A stretch of 63,972 nucleotides of DNA, the filler included, from Octopus bimaculoides (lineage: Eukaryota): NCBI RefSeq assembly GCF_001194135.2. It is 6 parts of 6 records of this genome, joined end to end, with 100 filler letters (N's around TTAATTAATTAA, not from the genome) between each part and the next. Parts side by side here need not be neighbours in the genome. Positions count along the whole stretch, not along the records: positions 37,666 to 48,682 come from NC_068981.1; 5 more parts are not named here. One strand, 5' to 3'. The position numbers and the translations under genes were made by a program. Positions 3,225-48,682 of the stretch are shown here, piece by piece; the first letter of the stretch is position 1, and each line of letters starts with the position of its first letter. Under the pieces are notes generated by a model that saw only the letters and a program-made list of their open reading frames with translations, was not told the DNA's origin and did not search any database.

Positions 3225-3686
3225 CCTCTGCTTTGTTTTTGTTTTTTTCTTTATCATACCAAAAGCAGCTTTTATTATAAGGATTGTTTCAGCAGGAAGC
3301 TAGCAAAACTGTTTGAGATAAGACGCCTTGCCATATTTCTTCTGGCTCTTAACATTCTGAATTCAAATCTTGCCAAGGTCAACTTTATCTTTCATCCGGC
3401 TGAGGTTGATAAAATGGAGCACAGTCAAGAAGTGGAGTCAAATAGTACCAACTAATCCGCACCAACCCTCAAAACCATTACTAAGGATGGTGAACAGGCA
3501 GACATGTTAGAGCATTAGACAAATTGCCATGGGATGTTTCTTTTGGTGCTTTAAATTTTGGTTTCAAATCCTGTTGAAGTCAGCTTTGCCTTTTATTATT
3601 CTTTTGGGGGTCAATAAAATAAAGGACCAATCAATTTCTCAAGTCAGTTTTATTGATTTTATGCTCTCATCTCCAAATATTATTTT

Positions 3687-37665: not shown

Positions 37666-38123
37666 CCGTCCAGGGGGAACAACCACGCGCTCTTCTGTAC
37701 CAACAGACGCTACGATCGCGACCGTACCTGTACGCCCGTTGTATTTGGGTGGGGCGGTGCCACCGGGGCCGCCAGGTAGCCGTGCCGGTCCGGGATCGAT
37801 GCCGATGCAGATCCTCAGCAACCAGTTGCGGGCCGGCGCCGAGTTGGTCGGCTCATGCTCCGAGGGCAGTCCCGACCGTGACCAGTCCCAAGGGGTGGAG
37901 TTTCGCTCTACTCGGGATGTCCCACTAGCATCGCGAGCCTCGGCCTTTCGCGCAGCGAGGAACGGTTTGGTACCTTTGGTTACCCCTTTACGAGAGGGAC
38001 GGACGCGGGCTGGGTGAGAGCCATCACGAGCCGCCCCTCCCTCTAGGGGCATAAGCTCTCTCACCACGACAAGGTAGTACCGGGTACCGCCTGAAGATCG
38101 TAATAGGGGCTACCTTAAGAGAG
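37666..38123 (-). mobile_element. GC-rich 5' end of a retroelement, probably RTE clade
   Basis: Sharp GC/CpG-rich island; ACCTTGTCGTGGTGAGAGAGCTT resembles the 5' motif I recall from RTE/BovB-type LINEs; truncated by the join. Confidence 0.5.
37969..38123 (-). ncRNA. Candidate HDV-like (CPEB3-type) self-cleaving ribozyme
   Basis: P1 CUCUCUU/GAGAGAG; P2 GGUACU/GGUACC; P3 ACC/GGU; L3 UUGUCGU; P1.1 G-C; long P4; J4/2 CAAA. Confidence 0.65.
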
Positions 38124-40026
38124 GTGAATAAAATACTGAAAGAAATGAAGACAAATAATATAAACGAAATGAATAGATCGATTAAAGCCTGCATCATCTA
38201 CATAGGAATTAAAGTAGGTCTCGAACCACACCGTAAATGTGGGAATGAAGGAAAAGAACTTTGTCTGAAAAAAAGAATAAAACAATCAACGAACGAACTA
38301 CGTTAAGATATCAACAACTCTGAAAGAAAGAAAAAAAGGTGAAATCAAGAGAGAGGAGAAATATCAGGAACTAGAACGTACATATAGGATGAAGAAAAAG
38401 AGCCTAAATGTAGTTCTTGAAGAGCTGAAACAAAGACTGCAGGTTAAAGAGACAAAGATCAAAAGATATGACCACAGAATTGAACAATATAAAATCAACA
38501 GATTGTTCCAACAAGACCAGAAAAGGGTTTATCAACAACTGAATTGAAAGGATAACAGCTGTGAGAGACCAGACGCTGAAGAAAGTAAAAGGTTTTGGAG
38601 TAACATCTGGGATAATGGAAGAAAGCATAACAAATATTCTAAATGGTTGAAGGAATTCAGGTCGGAAAAATATGAAGTTAAATAGAGCAATATTAGAATG
38701 ACGATTGAAATGGCTACCAGGCAGACAACTAAGATTTTCCTAGGATTGGATGGGATAAATTTCCCAGCACTACACAAAAGTATAGCCACACAAATGGATA
38801 AAATTATCAACAACGGTGTACAAATCCCAAAGTGACTGACCACAGGTGAAACAATTTTCTTTTGGAGTAGATAATTACCGGCCTATCACCTGTCTGCTCC
38901 TAATGTGGAAGCTGATGATAGGAATAACATCTACTTATGTGTATAACTTCTTGGAAATGAATGACAAATTGCCAGTGGAGCAGAAATGGTGCAAAAGGAA
39001 AAGCCGAAAGCAAAAGACCAACTTCTGATATACAGAATGGTACAGAACAACTGCAAAAGAAAGACTTACTAATCTGGGCATGGCGTGTATCGATTGTAAG
39101 AAAGCGTATGATATGTTCCCCATTCCTGGATTTTTAGAAAGTCTTGAGTTGGTACAGGTGTCTGTTAACATACGAAATTTTATTAGGAGATCAATGAAAG
39201 ACTGGAATACAGAGTTAACTTTATGTGGAAAATGTTTGGCGAGGGTTTACATCAAGAGAAGCATATTTCAAGGAGACAGCCTATTATCATTGTTGTTTGT
39301 GAGTTGTACGATACCCCTCACACAGATACAATGGAAAATGACATCAGGGTACACCTTGAAAGGTGGAGGAAATTTAAATCATCTGTTATATATGGATGAC
39401 TTAAAGATTTTTGGGAAGACCGAACGTGAAATGAATGGCCTACTCTCAACAGTGCAGATATTCAGTAAGGATATCGGAATGAAATGTGGGACTACAAAGT
39501 GTGGTATGCTTATAATACGAAGAGGCAAACTAGAAAAGTGATGACAATTAACAAGAGACGACACCCCAAAGCGATACTGACAGACTTTATGTGCCTAGAA
39601 ACAGGGCTGGAAGAGGTTTCATAGGATGCAAGATCTGTGTTGTCAACGAGAAGAACAGTTTGGAATGGTATATCAAACAGCAGAGTGAATTCTTGCTTAC
39701 CGCTGTTAGAATTAACAATACAATACCTACCGAAAATGTGATGCACCCACAAAAATTTAAGAAACAAGATGAAGAAAGAGTAAACAACAGGAAAATGAAA
39801 CCACTGCATGAGCAATACCTCAGAGAGTTCGAAGGTAAAAACAAGATCAACATTTGGAGATGGCTAAGACAAAGTGATCTGAAAGAATGCACTGAGGTAT
39901 TGATAGGCAGCGCCTAGGAACAAGCTCTGAGAGCTAATTACATCAAGTTCCAAATAGATAAAAGTAGCGAATCGCCCCTTTGTAGGATGCGTGGCAGCAG
40001 ATATGAAACAATGCACTGCTCTCTCA
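38124..40026 (+). mobile_element. Decayed R4/Dong-like LINE (RT + CCHC start)
   Basis: DNYRPITCLLLMWKL, IDCKKAYDM, IFQGDSL, YMDDLKIF, QEQALRANYIK..CRM; many stops and frameshifts. Confidence 0.9.
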
Positions 40027-40098
40027 ATAATAATAATAATAATAATAATAATGATAATAATAATAATAATAATAATGATGATGATGATGATGATGATG

Positions 40099-40166
<68 letters not shown>
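40027..40166. repeat. (AAT)n/(GAT)n microsatellite
   Basis: Visible in sequence. Confidence 0.95.
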
Positions 40167-40167
<1 letters not shown>

Positions 40168-40426
40168 TGCTAAAGNNNNNNNNNNNNNNNNNNNNNNNNN
40201 NNNNNNNNNNNNNNNNNNNNNNNNNNNNNNNNNNNNNNNNNNNNNNNNNNNNNNNNNNNNNNNNNNNNNNNNNNNNNNNNNNNNNNNNNNNNNNNNNNNN
40301 NNNNNNNNNNNNNNNNNNNNNNNNNNNNNNNNNNNNNNNNNNNNNNNNNNNNNNNNNNNNNNNNNNNNNNNNNNNNNNNNNNNNNNNNNNNNNNNNNNNN
40401 NNNNNNNNNNNNNNNNNNNNNNNNNN

Positions 40427-40703
40427 CTCGAATGTGGAATCTAAAAACAGAAACAATTCCTATCAGAGTAGGTGCCTTAGGTATAATAAAAAAAATATTC
40501 AGACAAATACATAACAAAAACACCAGGACTTACAAATATATATAACATACAGAAAATTGCACTACTGGGTACTGCACACATTCTACGCAAAACACTTTCA
40601 ATACAGTAAACATAAGAGCACCACAGCAAACCACAGCACATACCCAAGGCGCACAGAGCTGCGCTCGGTAGTGAAGTGAAAGCACGTTATAAAAGTAAAA
40701 CTA

Positions 40704-40772
<69 letters not shown>
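40427..40772 (+). mobile_element. 3' end of a second R4/Dong-like LINE with (AAT)n tail
   Basis: RMWNLKTETIPIRVGALG...IQKIALLGTAHILRKTLSIQ*, short UTR, (aat)n. Confidence 0.85.
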
Positions 40773-40773
<1 letters not shown>

Positions 40774-40781
40774 TGCTAAAG

Positions 40782-41690
40782 CTCGTAGACAATCACGAGA
40801 GGCATAAGGAGTTTCATTCTGTTATAAAGAAGACCCAAAATTTGCTATTGAAGTCATGCATGATACCTAGGGTGAACAACCTGAGAGAAGTTCGGCAAAT
40901 GTTGCAAAGAATTTGAAATTAATGGCAAAGAGAAAAGTGCGCGAGCAGTTGGTTGATGGGTGAGAAGAGATACCTCGGCAAAGCAAATATATGGCCCGTA
41001 GGAAACAAGGTGATGTAATCCAGGAGCACAACCGTCAGTGGCTACGGATCTCAAGGCCAAAGGTGGAGAGTGAAGGTTTCACCTTAGCTGCTCAAGATTA
41101 GAACTTATTGAACCGGACCTACCAAGCGAATGCGATGAAAATTGGAGTAGATTCTGCAATGATGTTATTGAAGCAGTGGAGAATAAAATATTTGGAGGGA
41201 AAGGATTGGCACCAGTGGAGTATAGTTGAAGGCAAGACAGATTTGTCCAATATATACACTAGTTAAAATATCGGTTAAAATGTTGAGAAATGGTATAAGC
41301 GCCACCCTGGGGCTGTAACTGAGGGAGAAAATATAACAACTCTTTGGGACTTTTCAGTACATACAGACAGAACCATCAAAGCTAATAAAGTGGTTATTGT
41401 GAAAGACCAAAACAATAAAGTTTGTTTATTGATTGACATGAGTATTCCTTGTGACATATCACGGAAAAAGAATTTGACAAACTCAGAAATAAGGATTTGT
41501 TCATTGAAACTGAAAAAAAGTGACATCACAAGATGTTTACCGTACCACTGATTGTAGGAGCACATGAAATGATAAAAAATGAAGTGAAAATGAAAATTAT
41601 TATTATCCCTTACCATCCCTGCAAGAATTGCAAAAGATTGTCTTAACTGGTATGCGACACGTATTGAGAACATTGTCGATGTGAGAATGA
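40782..41690 (+). mobile_element. Older R4/Dong-like LINE 3' fragment
   Basis: EGFTLAAQD, LWDFSVHTDRTIKANK, CLLIDMSIPCD, LQELQKIVLTG remnants. Confidence 0.8.
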
Positions 41691-43409
41691 TTACAACTCA
41701 CATATGTTAATTTTTTGTTCCTACAACTTCATTTCATTTTGAAAATGATGAATCTGGTGTGTTCCGTGTAATGGCTTATCAATATACAGAGTGAGTTTTT
41801 TTTCGTCATAGGAAGTCGGGAAGATACATGGCAAGAAATTGACACAAAACTGAAAGAACAATTCATAATAATAATAATTTCTGTTTACTGCTAAAGTGAC
41901 GGATGTGATGTTATTACAAAGTCAAGTTGGAAAACGGTGGGAGTGTTTATACAAAACTCTATATGAAAGAACTGACATGAGAAATTACAGATGAAAAGAA
42001 GTGAAACATGCCAATATGGTAACAGACAACTAAGATTAACACATTTTGGATGACGATATCTGTCAAATCTAGTTGTTTTCCTGCTGAATTCTCTGGTGCA
42101 TGATGAATCCTGCTATGCTTTCTACTTTCATCCACCTTCCAACAATTTCACCGAAGAGGGAAAATCTAGAGGTCAACATTTCCTTATCGAACCTCACTTT
42201 CCTTTCTAAGTTAAAGTTGAAGAAGTTGATGAGTATTTAGCGGAATAAGATTTTGATTTTAATCTTTTTAATGTGCTCCAACATAAACCTCTTTTGCCAT
42301 AGTTACTGGGCAGGCATGAAGTACTCTGTCCAGCTGCAGAGCAGCTGTAAAACCATTTTCGTGATGGAATTAGCTTGCAGTTTGCTCTACCTTTTATACT
42401 GTTCAACAAAACTACACAAGTTACTAATTCTTGGATATTGAATGAGAGTGCATACAACGGTTTGGTCACTCTGCACACAAATCAGATTGAAATTCTGTAG
42501 ACATGATATCAGAATATCCAGCTTAGAAATGTTTGAATGTTGTCCGTAGTCCTAGGGATGAATGCTTTCCGAAATAAACTTTTCAATTATTCTTTACGAA
42601 CGTATATGCACCTGTACACCGTCGCTGATGTCTACTGTATAATGCTTTATAGAATAAAGGGTTGACATTACCTGCAAACATCTACCTATATTCCAGATGC
42701 AAGGTGCCAAAACCTGGTCTTCACTTAACAGAGAACTGCATCTCATCAAAATGTTGAGACACTGGAAATCATTCTTTAATGTCAACACCCCAGTCTTTAG
42801 CGCTCCCACCTCCTCAACTACTGAAGCCACTTTAGCTTGGTATTGGCATAGTCATAATCTAAAGGGTAAATCATTTGATTATAGTGCATGACTCTTGAAT
42901 AGTCAATCATGAAAAAGATCAAGAATATTGACACAGAGGAATGTTAGATATTACAAATGGTAATTTGTCATTCCATAAATGTATCTTAGCAAAGTGTTTG
43001 ACATTTCTGAGAAAAGGTTAACTATTTGTCAGAATCAAATGTAGAGCGGATTCAACACCGCCACCCATTTCAGTTCACAGTTTAGAGAATTTTGGCTAAA
43101 TCAATATGTTAATGCGGCTTATTTGTTATATATATACTTACAGATTAATAAGAGCGGCCGACCAACAGAAAGTACAACAACGAACAAATTTGTTTTCCGC
43201 TAATCAGTTAAATTTTCCCAAGCTCTGATTTCAAATCTAGCTGTGATCAATTTTCTCTTTTGTCCATCTGAGACTGATTAAAGGAAGTTTTGTGCAAGAA
43301 GATTTTCCATTTCTTTCTAGACATACTTTCGTATATTCTAAATCAAGACAACAACTGCATCAATCACGAGCTTGAACAATCATATGAAATCTTATACCAC
43401 ATCTCCCTA

Positions 43410-43507
<98 letters not shown>

Positions 43508-43702
43508 TTTTCTGTCAATATACCTACCTACCTACCTNNNNNNNNNNATGTTAATAGTTACCAGAGGTAGCAAAATTACACTAGAAACCAAGATATCACA
43601 GCCGTTTTACAGGTAGAGATACCAAGTTAAAGTGATACATTTTGAGAAGATATGAATAATAATAATAAATGGAGCAAAACGAATATAAATAAAAGTTCCT
43701 TT

Positions 43703-43793
43703 AATTCCTACACATGTTTCAAAATATATGAGAGCCCTTCTACAAAGAAGTAAGAGCTGCTGGAATTCCTCATATATTCATCTTCAGGGAATC
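43703..43793 (-). ncRNA. Type I hammerhead-like motif (Penelope-style terminus)
   Basis: Stem I GAUUCC/GGAAUU, CUGAAGA, stem II AAUAUAUGAG/CUCAUAUAUU, GAAA, stem III AC/GU, GUA triplet. Confidence 0.5.
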
Positions 43794-44801
43794 AACATAT
43801 AAAAGCAAGACAAATACGAAATGATGAGGTAACTTACGAGCTTAGATGTTACATGGTCAAGTGACCGTTAGAACGTTTGTTTACATAAAGATATAAAGGG
43901 ATCAAAAATATTATTCCATGGGCGTTAGGAGTAAGAACGCTTGTTTACATAGAGGTATAAAGGGAGGGGTTGTAAACGTGATGCTAAAGGTTTAAATTAA
44001 ATGAATGATTGAAATGTGGGGAGGAAGACAAATATGTTACAGTACAGAAAAATTGAAAGAGCGTGAGCTAATTGCTAAGTCAAAAATGGAGGAAGGGAGA
44101 GAACGAAGGGAGTACATCAAATTAAATATATACTATATAAGGAAAACTAATTACATATTTTATATGAAGTGAAGAAAGTGAATAAAAATAAAACATCATA
44201 GCCTAGTAATATATTATATTATTATATTATTATACGGATATTAACGTTAGTTAATGGTAAAACAAAGTACAGGATATTTATTGGAGAAGTAATAATGATA
44301 ATAATGTACACGTTTACAAGAAGATTAGAAATACTTAGTTGAAGTCACCGAAGGCACGAGCAACAACCTGTGTGGCATTACTAAGAATAATTTACTTAGC
44401 TAACTGTAGAAGGGGAAAATAAAGAACTAGTGGTGATTGAGGCAAATATATATATATATNNNNNNNNNNNNNNNNNNNNNNNNNNNNNNNNNNNNNNNNN
44501 NNNNNNNNNNNNNNNNNNNNNNNNNNNNNNNNNNNNNNNNNNNNNNNNNNNNNNNNNNNNNNNNNNNNNNNNNNNNNNNNNNNNNNNNNNNNNNNNNNNN
44601 NNNNNNNNNNNNNNNNNNNNNNNNNNNNNNNNNNNNNNNNNNNNNNNNNNNNNNNNNNNNNNNNNNNNNNNNNNNNNNNNNNNNNNNNNNNNNNNNNNNN
44701 NNNNNNNNNNNNNNNNNNNNNNNNNNNNNNNNNNNNNNNNNNNNNNNNNNNNNNNNNNNNNNNNNNNNNNNNNNNNNNNNNNNNNNNNNNNNNNNNNNNN
44801 N

Positions 44802-44836
<35 letters not shown>

Positions 44837-44978
44837 ATATACACATACACACACATATATATATATATATAAATATATACACACACACATATACACACCT
44901 ACACATACACATATGCACACATACGCACTCCTATACATACATTCCTGTATATATACATTCCTGTATATATACATACAT

Positions 44979-45016
<38 letters not shown>

Positions 45017-45366
45017 ACATACACACATATGCATATATATATATATACATATATGTGTTTTGTTGAAGATTATAAAAAATATTAAGATTAATAACATACT
45101 GATTTGAAACGAAGAATGTAAACATGATAAATGAAACACCATTACACTGTGATATATTAATATACTGATGTTAGCGCTAATCAATGGAAGAACGAGGTAC
45201 AGGGTATTTTGTAGAGAAATAATAATAATAACAACAATATACATGCTTATAAGGAGAAGGTCGGATATAAGGCAAAGCAACTAGTGGTACAAAGCAACTC
45301 AGGTAGTAATTACTGGGAAGGAAATTAGTTAATCAACTATAGAAGGGAAAAAGGCAAGTTACAGTG

Positions 45367-45404
<38 letters not shown>

Positions 45405-45739
45405 GATGTGGATATTAATAATAATAATAATAATAATAATATTTGACAAGTTAAAATAATGGTCATTACATATAATTCCTTTATTATAGCAAATTTGGCT
45501 TACAGCTGTTTCCAGTAGTCATATAGATTGGTTGACTCGATTGGTCTATTGATCAACTGAGGTAAATTGAAAGACCTAAGATAATTAATGATACCTTCGG
45601 CAGAGCCATTACAGGAAGTAAGAAACAGAGCACTTGAAGAATGTCTAATGTCTATTGTATTGGGAAAGTGGGGTAAGATTTGGATGTTTAATTAGAAAAT
45701 GTAAAAACTAGTTACAATGGGATTGTAGCAATTGAGCGA

Positions 45740-46035
45740 GTGGTACATATAGTGCGCATCATGGTCATCGCTTGGCTGTAAAACCAAAGAAACCATTCAA
45801 AGTCTAGCTGAAGACTAGTCTGAAGATCAACATCAACCCTTTAAGCGTGAACAGCATCTTTATAAACTGTTTATTTTGACGTTGTTGCAGCTGGAGTTGG
45901 GTGGATTACTGCCAGCAGAAATGTAAAAAATAGGCATAGTCGCCGATAAATACCTAACCTTCCATCACAGACATTCACATGTTCCTTCTGTAACCGAAGC
46001 TGCTCATCAAGAATTGCTATATGCAGTCATGAAAC
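45740..46035 (+). mobile_element. RTE-BovB-like LINE C-terminal remnant
   Basis: GHRLAVKPKKPFKV*LKTSLK and TFTCSFCNRSCSSRIAICSH zinc finger. Confidence 0.65.
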
Positions 46036-46302
46036 AATTTTCAATTCAAGAAAGTGATAATCATTAAATTTAATGTTCAACCATAAATTGTAGGAAAGCA
46101 TGTGTATCCGTGCATGTATATGTGTATGTGTTTGTGTAAGCATGTTTGGGCGGGTGTGCAACAGAAATATGGAAATATTAAAGTGACCGCTTGAGTTGGA
46201 AATATAGAATTATTAGTTCTAAAACCTTCCAGTGAAATTAATTGTACTTGCGATGTTCTCAGTAGGATTTTCAAAATGAACGTAAATTAAGAAATAATCG
46301 AA

Positions 46303-46530
46303 GGTGTGGTAAGTAGCTTGCTTACGAACCACATGGTTCTGGGTTCAGTCCCACTGCGTGGCACCTTGGGCAAGTGTCTTCTACTATAGCCTCAGGCAGA
46401 CCAAAGCCTTGTGAGTGGGTTTGGTAGACGGAAACTGAAAGAAGCCCGTCGTATATANNNNNNNNNNNNNNNNNNNNNNNNNNNNNNNNNNNNNNNNNNN
46501 NNNNNNNNNNNNNNNNNNNNNNNNNNNNNN

Positions 46531-46563
<33 letters not shown>

Positions 46564-46740
46564 TTATCTGTCTGTGTCTGTCCCCCAACATCGCTTGACA
46601 ACCGATGCTGGTGTGTTTACGTCCCCGAAACGTAGCGGTTCGGCTTACAAAGAATAAGTCCTGGGGCCGATTTGCTCGACTAAAGGCGGTGCTCCAGCAT
46701 GGCCGCAGTCAGATGACTGAAACAAGTAAAAGAGTAAAAC
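46303..46740 (+). mobile_element. SINE family A (gap in the internal microsatellite)
   Basis: Head, body and tail match other copies. Confidence 0.9.
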
Positions 46741-47870
46741 AGTATCCTATTCATGGAAATTGTTTTGATTAACGAATGGTCAGAGGAAGACAGATATGGT
46801 GTATAATGTAAGTATTCCCAGGTTTGTTTTCATATATTTGATGTTTATCTCGAACATACGAAGGTCAATACTGAAAGAGAAAATATATGAATTAAAGGAA
46901 TCCAAGTCAGCCTCTGTACTCGGGTGTTTGATTGCAGAGGTGTTTCCAGTATGGAGTCTTTCAGATGAAACTCTGTAAACGAAACGAGAATAAGCAAGAT
47001 TGGAAAATAGGTGGAGTAGGTATACTAATAGCTTGTTCATAGGCACAAACACATTCGTTGTAGCACAAGAACTCAGAAAGCCTCATGTCTGTAAACTAAT
47101 AGCTGTATAGTGTGTGCATGTGTGTGTGTATATCTTTAGTGATTACTCGAATGTCCGGCCTTCTTTTAGATACAACCGAGGATATTAGGATTCGAACAGA
47201 TGCTTTGTTCTTAGATGTGAGAGGCATTCAGGCCTGAGTCTTAGTTGAATTAACATAAATACAGCAAAAATCTCGCCAAAATGAACAGTATTCTTTATTT
47301 CTCAGACAACTTTTTGTTTTCTTATTACTTGTTTCAGTTATTAGGCTGCGGCCACAGTACTAATTTTTTTAAAGCCTGGTACTTATGCTACACAACGAGA
47401 CAAAGAGGACGACAAAAGAGAAATTACAAACGAGCAGGAACACGAAATAATGTCATAAGTAACATAAGTTGCTAGAGTCCAGCAAAGGAATTTACCTGGC
47501 TGGCAGAGAACACTTTCAGAACAAGAAGCACTTTTAGGAGGCAGAGAAAAATTTATGGATACTGCAACTTGCCATGAGTTGTTGATTCCGAACAATGCGA
47601 CTAAAAAGTTGGTACTTACGAGCATCATTAGGAAACATTTGCAAATAAGTAACGAAAACGAAATTTAGATGATTGCAAATTTTCCTTTCACTATATTGCA
47701 CACTTTGACGTCACTCACCCCTCGACATCATTTACTCATTAGTATTTCAACATATTCTTATTTATTCCTATATAAATTTCCCTACAAATAATGTTATGCA
47801 TATACATTGTAGTATATGTGAAGGCGTGTGGCTTAGTGGTTAGGGGGTAGCGCTTACGGTCACACGGTCA

Positions 47871-48105
47871 CAAGATTGGGCCAAAAGTAGGTATACACTT
47901 TTTAAATTAACTTATTTATTTTTTTACAGTTATCGTGAATAATGGCAAATAATTTGAGTAAAGAAAGTGGATGCTGCAATGCTGGGGGTGGTAATTTTGA
48001 GGATTTATGAGAGTCGTATTTTATAAACGTAATTGTAATAAATAAGTGTAAATGCATTAAAATGAACAAAATTTTCAAATATATACCTAATTTTGGCCTA
48101 TCCTG
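47871..48105. mobile_element. Tc1/mariner-type MITE abutting a truncated tRNA-SINE head (47820-47870)
   Basis: Imperfect TIR caagattgggccaaaagtaggtataca / tatatacctaattttggcctatcctg; TA on the right. Confidence 0.65.
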
Positions 48106-48169
48106 TATATGTATATGTATTCGTTTATGTAATTGGTTTGCGAGATTCTTGACATGAAATAGTGTTTGG

Positions 48170-48330
48170 AAACAGATATTTTTATATTTGGGGATGGTAA
48201 TTTTTTACATATTAAACACATGCACTGTTTATTTGATCTTCACTTTAGATTTATTATTATTATTATTAGTTCTTTCGTCACACATTCTGTGATCTCTCTA
48301 GCGACTTTCTGCCCCAAGTCTCTCCTCTTT
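48170..48330 (+). repeat. Unclassified dispersed repeat, homologous to 52270-52450
   Basis: Shared aaca(g/a)atatttttatattt...ga(t/c)ggt and tcacaca(t)tctgtga(t/c)ctctc(t/c)ag(c/t)gac. Confidence 0.45.
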
Positions 48331-48682
48331 TCCTGTTTGGAATATGTATGTATGTATGTATGTTATCAATCAGTTTTATTTCTGTATTTCTTGTCCATAG
48401 AGAAAGAGCCGGACTCTAACATAGATTCAAGGCTCCTTCATTGGAACTTTTATCAACATCATCTAGGTATTTGTGCATATGTGTGTGTGTGCAGTATTTG
48501 GTGTTAGTGTATGCGCAGATTTGTATGTCTGTTTTATGGATGCGTTTTTATGTCTAGATGCATGCATATGTATTTATGTGCTAAATTTTTGGAAAGTTTT
48601 ACATATCTTTACAGTTCCATTGATGGCTTGAATCTGTAGTCTTCTAATCAGCCTTTTTCTTTCAGGTTTTGAGAACCCTAAT

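Follow-up and report, generated by a model that had tools for sequence, protein, structure and literature searches.

The locus and the candidate fold

The window analysed here is a stretch of 63,972 nucleotides (nt), filler included, from Octopus bimaculoides (NCBI RefSeq assembly GCF_001194135.2), and the fold analysis concerns one piece of it, positions 37666-48682, which comes from NC_068981.1. At the left end of this piece, a GC-rich segment, visible for 458 nt up to the piece edge, abuts a decayed copy of a Dong-like long interspersed nuclear element (LINE). Read on the minus strand from this junction inward (38123-37969, 155 nt), the GC-rich DNA contains all elements of the nested double pseudoknot of ribozymes like that of hepatitis delta virus (HDV), in the right order and with the right spacing. 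Judged from sequence and computed energetics, the fold is probably a true HDV-like ribozyme that marks the 5′ end of an inserted element, with cleavage predicted at the point where that element begins. A sequence-only reading of the same DNA had proposed a complete fold of this kind, and all of the pairings that it listed are present. Index i on the minus strand corresponds to coordinate 38124-i, and the candidate is numbered 1-155 (38123 to 37969). Its parts are the following.

38117-38123, minus strand: P1 5′ strand CUCUCUU; 7/7 pairing with 38056-38062; predicted cleavage 5′ of C38123 (38124/38123)
38082-38116, minus strand: J1/2, 35 nt, indices 8-42, with its own hairpin (P1.2-like peripheral helix, 10-13/38-41 plus 15-19/32-37)
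38076-38081, minus strand: P2 5′ strand GGUACU; 6 base pairs (bp) with 37969-37974; indices 43-48 with 150-155; duplex -6.5 kcal/mol
38073-38075, minus strand: P3 5′ strand ACC; 3 bp with 38063-38065; indices 49-51 with 59-61
38066-38072, minus strand: L3, UUGUCGU; U52, C56 and G57 fit the conserved U...CG; G54 (38070) is the candidate P1.1 partner
38063-38065, minus strand: P3 3′ strand GGU; pairs with ACC
38056-38062, minus strand: P1 3′ strand GAGAGAG; indices 62-68 with 1-7
38052-38055, minus strand: J1/4; C69 (38055) can pair with G54 in a P1.1 of reversed polarity; U70 lies opposite U53; U71 and A72 follow
37981-38051, minus strand: P4, a long imperfect hairpin, indices 73-143 (71 nt); 7-bp closing helix UGCCCCU/AGGGGUA (73-79 with 137-143)
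37975-37980, minus strand: A144 and J4/2 C145-C146-A-A-A; candidate catalytic cytosine 37978 or 37979; fits C-R-R-A
37969-37974, minus strand: P2 3′ strand GGUACC; pairs with GGUACU

The elements follow one another in the order P1-J1/2-P2-P3-L3-P3′-P1′-P1.1-P4-J4/2-P2′, and P2 adjoins P3, and P3′ adjoins P1′, without a linker, which is also the case in canonical HDV-like ribozymes. P1 consists of six Watson-Crick pairs and one U·G pair at its inner end. The 3-bp P3 closes a 7-nt L3 that carries the conserved U...C-G of the family (the U·G reverse wobble), and the two cytosines in P3 match the ribose-zipper acceptor positions reported for this helix. P1.1 is represented by one candidate pair, G54-C69, with U53 opposite U70. 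The cytosine followed by purines and an A that is typical of J4/2 (C-R-R-A) is found as C146-A-A-A directly before P2′, with C145 as a second candidate. A homopurine pair on top of P4, a feature reported for this ribozyme class, is possible between A72 and A144, in which case the catalytic cytosine may be C145 (37979) and not C146 (37978). The earlier placement of the catalytic residue at 37978 therefore stands as one of two possibilities.

The computed energies allow the double pseudoknot to compete with unknotted folds. The minimum-free-energy fold of the 155-mer (-64.0 kcal/mol, z = -2.7 relative to shuffles) already includes P1 and P4, and the P4 hairpin that it retains has an energy of -42.7 kcal/mol alone. 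When P1 and P3 are forced and L3, both P2 strands and J4/2 are held single-stranded, the ribozyme-compatible nested fold has an energy of -59.1 kcal/mol; adding the P2 duplex (-6.5 kcal/mol) to this value brings the double pseudoknot to about parity with the unconstrained fold. The hairpin in J1/2, -8.0 kcal/mol alone, is kept in the constrained fold, where its base adjoins P1 and P2.

The boundary with the Dong-like LINE

To the right of the predicted cut lies the neighbouring element.

38124-39992, plus strand: decayed copy of a Dong-like (R2-superclade) LINE, with several frameshifts and stops and an RVT_1 domain, head-to-head with the GC-rich element

Relatives of this LINE in ENA assemblies and a Tara metagenome (L001-L003) are about 60% identical to it in protein and 67-71% in DNA. 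The reverse transcriptase (RT) of a relative, P0078, which is 52% identical to that of the window, has its best matches among solved structures in R2 proteins (E = 1.8e-15, vs. 5e-5 for L1 ORF2p). The relatives are bounded by (TAA)n on both sides, at 3253-3326 and 6965-7047 in L003 and likewise in L002, and in the window an (AAT)47 array (40026-40167) comes after the copy. An R2-superclade RT together with insertion at (TAA)n is characteristic of the Dong/R4 clade, which supports the sequence-only reading in its description of the neighbour as a Dong-like fragment in head-to-head orientation.

The left end of the LINE homology was located in three ways. BLASTN alignments to the three relatives (L001-L003) begin at 38131-38133. 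A profile of the relatives gives a confident alignment that starts with the valine codon at 38124, and low posterior support for the five residues to its left. Compared codon by codon, the 15 bases left of 38124 agree with the family consensus at 5/15 positions, which is the random level. Together, these results put the point where LINE homology ends at most ~3 nt from the predicted cut, 38124/38123. The GC-rich DNA begins where LINE homology stops, and the terminus of the element coincides with the predicted cut site. The coincidence of the cut with the switch from AT-rich to GC-rich sequence, which had already been noted, is matched by an independent homology breakpoint at 38124. A caveat had been that P1 overlaps codons that could belong to the Dong open reading frame (ORF; LREV). 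Since confident homology starts only at the V codon, this concern is largely removed, and the origin of P1 from LINE codons is not borne out beyond a small residual possibility.

What lies on the 5′ side of the LINE copy also bears on how the junction arose. The copy starts at the equivalent of L003:4082 and is without ~755 nt of the 5′ part of the family, and GC-rich DNA stands in place of the (TAA)n. A site-specific copy that was merely 5′-truncated should still abut its target repeat, which favours interruption by an insertion over simple truncation. GC content is 63-66% left of ~38065 and 33-39% to the right, and the CpG observed/expected ratio is 0.99 in the GC-rich part vs. 0.54 in the LINE. 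Undepleted CpG is consistent with a younger insert in an old LINE copy. The absent (TAA)n and the CpG contrast thus fit insertion into an older LINE copy, as opposed to another rearrangement, and are not proof of it.

Chance expectation

How often such a fold would arise by chance was estimated with a relaxed descriptor. It requires P1 with 7/7 pairs (G·U allowed), J1/2 of 0-45 nt, P2 of at least 5 bp, P3 of 3 bp, L3 of the form U-N-N-N-C-G-N, with its third position able to form a Watson-Crick pair of any kind with the nucleotide that follows P1′, at least 4 bp closing P4, and J4/2 of the form C-R-R-A. On both strands of 37666-48682 (22 thousand nt), the sole match is 38123-37969. First-order Markov sequence trained on local compositions gave 1 match in 24 million nt (Mnt). 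The real-DNA control consisted of ~120 GC-rich prokaryotic loci, selected for their chance identity to the core at its 15 specified bases. Its 1.74 Mnt contained 841 cores, and P1 was found in 61 of them, P2, J4/2 and P4 in 16, and a full match in one, which lies inside apparently ordinary coding DNA. The chance rate in GC-rich DNA is ~6e-7 per nucleotide, and the expected number of chance matches is roughly 0.001-0.01 per piece and ~5e-4 in the 458-nt GC-rich segment.

Further features fit although the descriptor leaves them free: P2 extends to 6 bp and the helix that closes P4 to 7 bp, the J1/2 hairpin abuts P1 and P2, P3 contains CC, an A·A pair is available on P4, and a U lies opposite a U at the second P1.1 position. 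Within the GC-rich segment, P1-compatible 7-mers are confined to its first seven bases.

Searches of the GC-rich segment

Downstream of the fold, the segment continues to the piece edge.

37666-37968, minus strand: rest of the GC-rich segment, ~65% GC, presumed 5′ untranslated region (UTR) of the inserted element; ends at the piece edge

A six-frame search of the GC-rich DNA against 5.8 billion proteins found no credible homologue, and Pfam returned nothing for the 458 visible nt. Plasmids and phages showed no similarity to the segment, and neither a tRNA nor a known RNA family was found in it on either strand. In metagenomes, the exact core pattern had 0 matches; a degenerate version gave one 21-nt identity, which is without a P1 partner and was judged to be chance. 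Matches in genome contigs were chance as well and supplied the real-DNA control described above. GC content is flat over the three codon positions in every frame. For this reason, a 129-codon minus-strand ORF, which starts at an AUG at 38050-38052 (indices 72-74, inside the P4 5′ strand) and is open to the piece edge, is probably not coding. With no codon periodicity, Pfam domain or homologue, neither a clade nor even a retroelement can be identified in the 458 visible nt, and the assignment to an RTE-like LINE in the sequence-only reading is not sustained. We infer a retroelement on the strength of the ribozyme and the boundary.

When the longest frame was used in a full HMMER search, only two bacterial repeat proteins (P0076, P0077) were returned, with six weak stretches each. 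These matches were judged spurious, since coding signal is absent in the window and repetition inflates the E-value. P0076 and P0077 are long bacterial-type repeat proteins with the repeat SGPATISGTPGG.YTVTLNGT.GTVVIAANQSG; six such repeats each resemble the translation of the GC-rich frame (GPARLPGGPGGTAPPKYNGRTGTVAIVAS).

Comparison with known HDV-like ribozymes

For R2, R4, Dong, Baggins, L1Tc and RTE elements it is established that HDV-like ribozymes cleave at or near the 5′ end. In such retroelement ribozymes, J1/2 can measure 23 to >700 nt and J1/4 0-2 nt, P2 has at least 5 bp, and P4 is variable. The ribozymes of R2/R4/Dong, RTE and Baggins share the role proposed here, the processing of read-through co-transcripts at or near the 5′ junction, and their size limits fit the candidate. 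However, these elements are known from ORFs and many copies, whereas the candidate element is seen as a single 458-nt visible part. In the R2 consensus, the nucleotides of L3 and P1.1 are conserved, the C that pairs being in L3; in the candidate, L3 supplies the G and J1/4 the C.

The ribozyme of Trypanosoma cruzi L1Tc/NARTc (L1TcRz) likewise cuts directly 5′ of a C+1 that is the first nucleotide of its element, has a one-pair P1.1, and lies within a 5′ UTR. The experimentally active L1Tc ribozyme has C1 and a single-pair P1.1, so that C at +1 is not disqualifying; the sequence-only reading had also named the C at +1 of L1Tc. L1TcRz is compact (77 nt), in contrast to the 155 nt of the candidate with its structured 35-nt J1/2 and 71-nt P4; there is no detectable sequence relationship between the two, and the host lineages differ. 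A survey of trypanosomatids found the original descriptor too restrictive, notably regarding the orientation of P1 and the make-up of P1.1. In L1Tc-type ribozymes the P1.1 bases differ. Crystal structures of fast natural ribozymes show a P1.1 of U:A plus C:U or U:U.

Swapped Watson-Crick P1.1 pairs keep activity in mutagenesis of the viral ribozymes. By analogy with these cases, the reversed P1.1 of the candidate lies within known tolerance and is a variant, not a new architecture. It had been called a clean compensatory swap; the swapped Watson-Crick pair is present, but 'compensatory' is not a term that one sequence can justify.

In large ribozymes of the drz-Agam-2 type, a structured J1/2 domain joins the outer ends of P1 and P2, as in the candidate. 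The J1/2 P1.2 'pinch' domain activates large HDV-like ribozymes, with an effect that saturates near 4 kcal/mol, a value exceeded by the -8.0 kcal/mol of the candidate J1/2 hairpin. The Rfam Agam models do not match the candidate, and the core nucleotides differ. Like the candidate, mammalian CPEB3 has the L3 pattern UU-N-N-CGU and one Watson-Crick P1.1 pair followed by a U/U position. The candidate differs from it in the reversed polarity of P1.1, in C instead of G at +1, in the large J1/2 and P4 inserts, and in being unmatched by the Rfam CPEB3 model. The contexts differ as well, CPEB3 being located in a conserved intron and the candidate at an element terminus.

Proposed role and alternative explanations

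The host element is most likely a retrotransposon of the non-LTR type (lacking long terminal repeats) or a non-autonomous derivative of one, GC- and CpG-rich, that inserted in opposite orientation into the older Dong-like LINE. Its transcription would come about by read-through from DNA upstream. On the nascent RNA, P1, P3, P4 and the hairpin of J1/2 would form, after which P2 and the one-pair P1.1 (G54-C69, with U53 opposite U70) would close the double pseudoknot. The J4/2 cytosine (C146 or C145) is the predicted general acid, and the cut would fall just 5′ of C38123. The product would be an element RNA with a defined 5′-OH end, and the ribozyme would be carried into every new copy.

A number of findings weigh against this reading. 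The Rfam models of the HDV family (HDV, CPEB3, Agam, F. prausnitzii) gave 0 matches at E ≤ 10 on the 11 kilobases of the piece, on 301 nt and on 126 nt, so that the Infernal check which the sequence-only reading had proposed came back negative. For the 155-nt version with its two large inserts such a failure is expected, because the models cannot encode pseudoknots and penalise large inserts. The classical descriptor calls for G1-Y and a C-G P1.1; the candidate instead has a C at +1, paired with G68, in place of G+1 in a G·U or G-Y pair, and G in L3 (38070) and C in J1/4 (38055) in place of C and G. P1 is of low complexity (CU/GA), and competing pairings exist. In the minimum-free-energy fold, J1/2 (20-27) pairs with L3/P3′ (54-61). 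GAGAGAG has two other partial partners within P4, one of them a stronger competitor that belongs to a perfect 8-bp complementarity, GGUGAGAG/CUCUCACC, between P3′/P1′ and the P4 tip (-12.5 kcal/mol). This competing hairpin, already raised in the sequence-only reading, is real.

38059-38066 with 38013-38020, minus strand: competing 8-bp helix GGUGAGAG/CUCUCACC; indices 59-66 and 104-111

It could be a ribozyme off-switch or folding trap, or a chance pairing in CU/GA-rich sequence. No RT, ORF or coding signal was seen in the 458 visible nt. A second copy of the GC-rich DNA was not found in the collections searched, which lack the source genome, and the candidate stands as a single copy. Finally, the descriptor was drawn up after the candidate was seen and, over the whole genome, hundreds of chance matches to it are expected; its rarity alone is therefore no proof.

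Most of these points can be turned into a case for a chance look-alike, in which the GC-rich DNA is ordinary flank or rearranged sequence beside a truncated LINE, the CU/GA P1 is fortuitous and the RNA would not cleave. GC-rich sequence readily supplies short helices, and the relaxed descriptor matches real non-ribozyme DNA about once per 1.7 Mnt. P1-compatible 7-mers are frequent in the T-rich antisense strand of the LINE, where they fill 1.4% of positions; at this frequency a P1 lies ≤3 nt from the boundary by chance in roughly 1 of 20 cases, which weakens the coincidence of cut and boundary. This explanation is a serious rival, although the less likely one. Only ~5e-4 matches are expected in the 458-nt segment, and fewer still with a cut ≤3 nt from the mapped boundary, features outside the descriptor also fit, and the lack of (TAA)n on the 5′ side of a (TAA)n-specific LINE calls for an additional event in any case.

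Two further explanations leave the element out. The candidate might be a genuine HDV-like ribozyme of cellular origin, in an intron or CpG island as in CPEB3, that merely lies beside a LINE breakpoint. In its favour, the segment is GC-rich, undepleted in CpG and resembles a CpG island, the searches turned up no evidence of a retroelement protein or repeat, and L3 and the single P1.1 pair with U/U can be likened to those of CPEB3. However, the exact coincidence of cut site and GC boundary is predicted by an element 5′ end and would here need a further coincidence, and no conservation was detected in the collections searched; a cellular ribozyme is thus improbable. Template switching, known to produce chimeras with other LINEs, would also explain a 5′-truncated LINE joined to foreign sequence without (TAA)n. 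The LINE RT would have jumped to a GC-rich cellular RNA, the RNA's 3′ end would make up the plus strand left of 38124, and the fold on the minus strand would be irrelevant. It is very improbable, as no homologues of the GC-rich DNA were found in the collections searched, no known RNA family matches either strand, no tRNA was found, and such a chimera leaves the complete minus-strand ribozyme fold unexplained.

If the favoured reading of a ribozyme at an element 5′ end holds and the RNA cleaves, it adds a retroelement ribozyme from a lineage for which no reported example was found in the literature. It would also be a natural test of the freedom of the P1.1 pair and the +1 base, and would indicate that searches with a fixed C-G P1.1 and G+1 undercount such ribozymes. 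More tentatively, at somewhat under an even chance, the candidate may represent a natural active lineage with a purine in L3 and a pyrimidine in J1/4 (the reversed P1.1) and C+1, located at the 5′ end of a GC-rich retroelement, so far undescribed, from an AT-rich invertebrate genome. Published descriptors, with C in L3, G in J1/4 and G at +1 fixed, would then systematically overlook a class of retroelement ribozymes. For annotation, the candidate would provide a precise 5′ end for an otherwise unrecognised GC-rich element. No new principle is involved, as HDV-like 5′-end processing of LINE co-transcripts is well established.

Other features of the LINE family and the piece

Bombyx Dong has an active HDV-like ribozyme at its 5′ leader position, and the 5′ ends of the LINE relatives were also considered. 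In L003 (3327-3560) and L002 (3339-3560), a conserved 5′ leader (CTGGGTTGGCGTCCAG...) directly follows (TAA)n. The relaxed descriptor found no HDV-like fold at the 5′ ends of L002 and L003; their leaders contain L3-like UAGUCGU/UAGCCGU without obvious P3 partners.

The remaining observations in the piece concern simple repeats. A second array, (AAT)22 at 40707-40773, lies 540 nt beyond (AAT)47. The same ATGCTAAAG comes after each of the two arrays, suggestive of a local duplication or of a second element that starts across the N gap at 40176-40426. Sub-threshold Rfam matches to microRNAs (mir-297, mir-1277, mir-3149 and others; 44798-45065) fall in TA/CA/TG microsatellites beside the N run at 44460-44801 and are low-complexity artefacts. 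A compound (ATCT)n/(TCTG)n microsatellite at 43410-43516 is broken by a 10-N run. The N runs at 40176-40426, 44460-44801 and 46458-46530 all lie within simple repeats, as expected of assembly gaps or masking.

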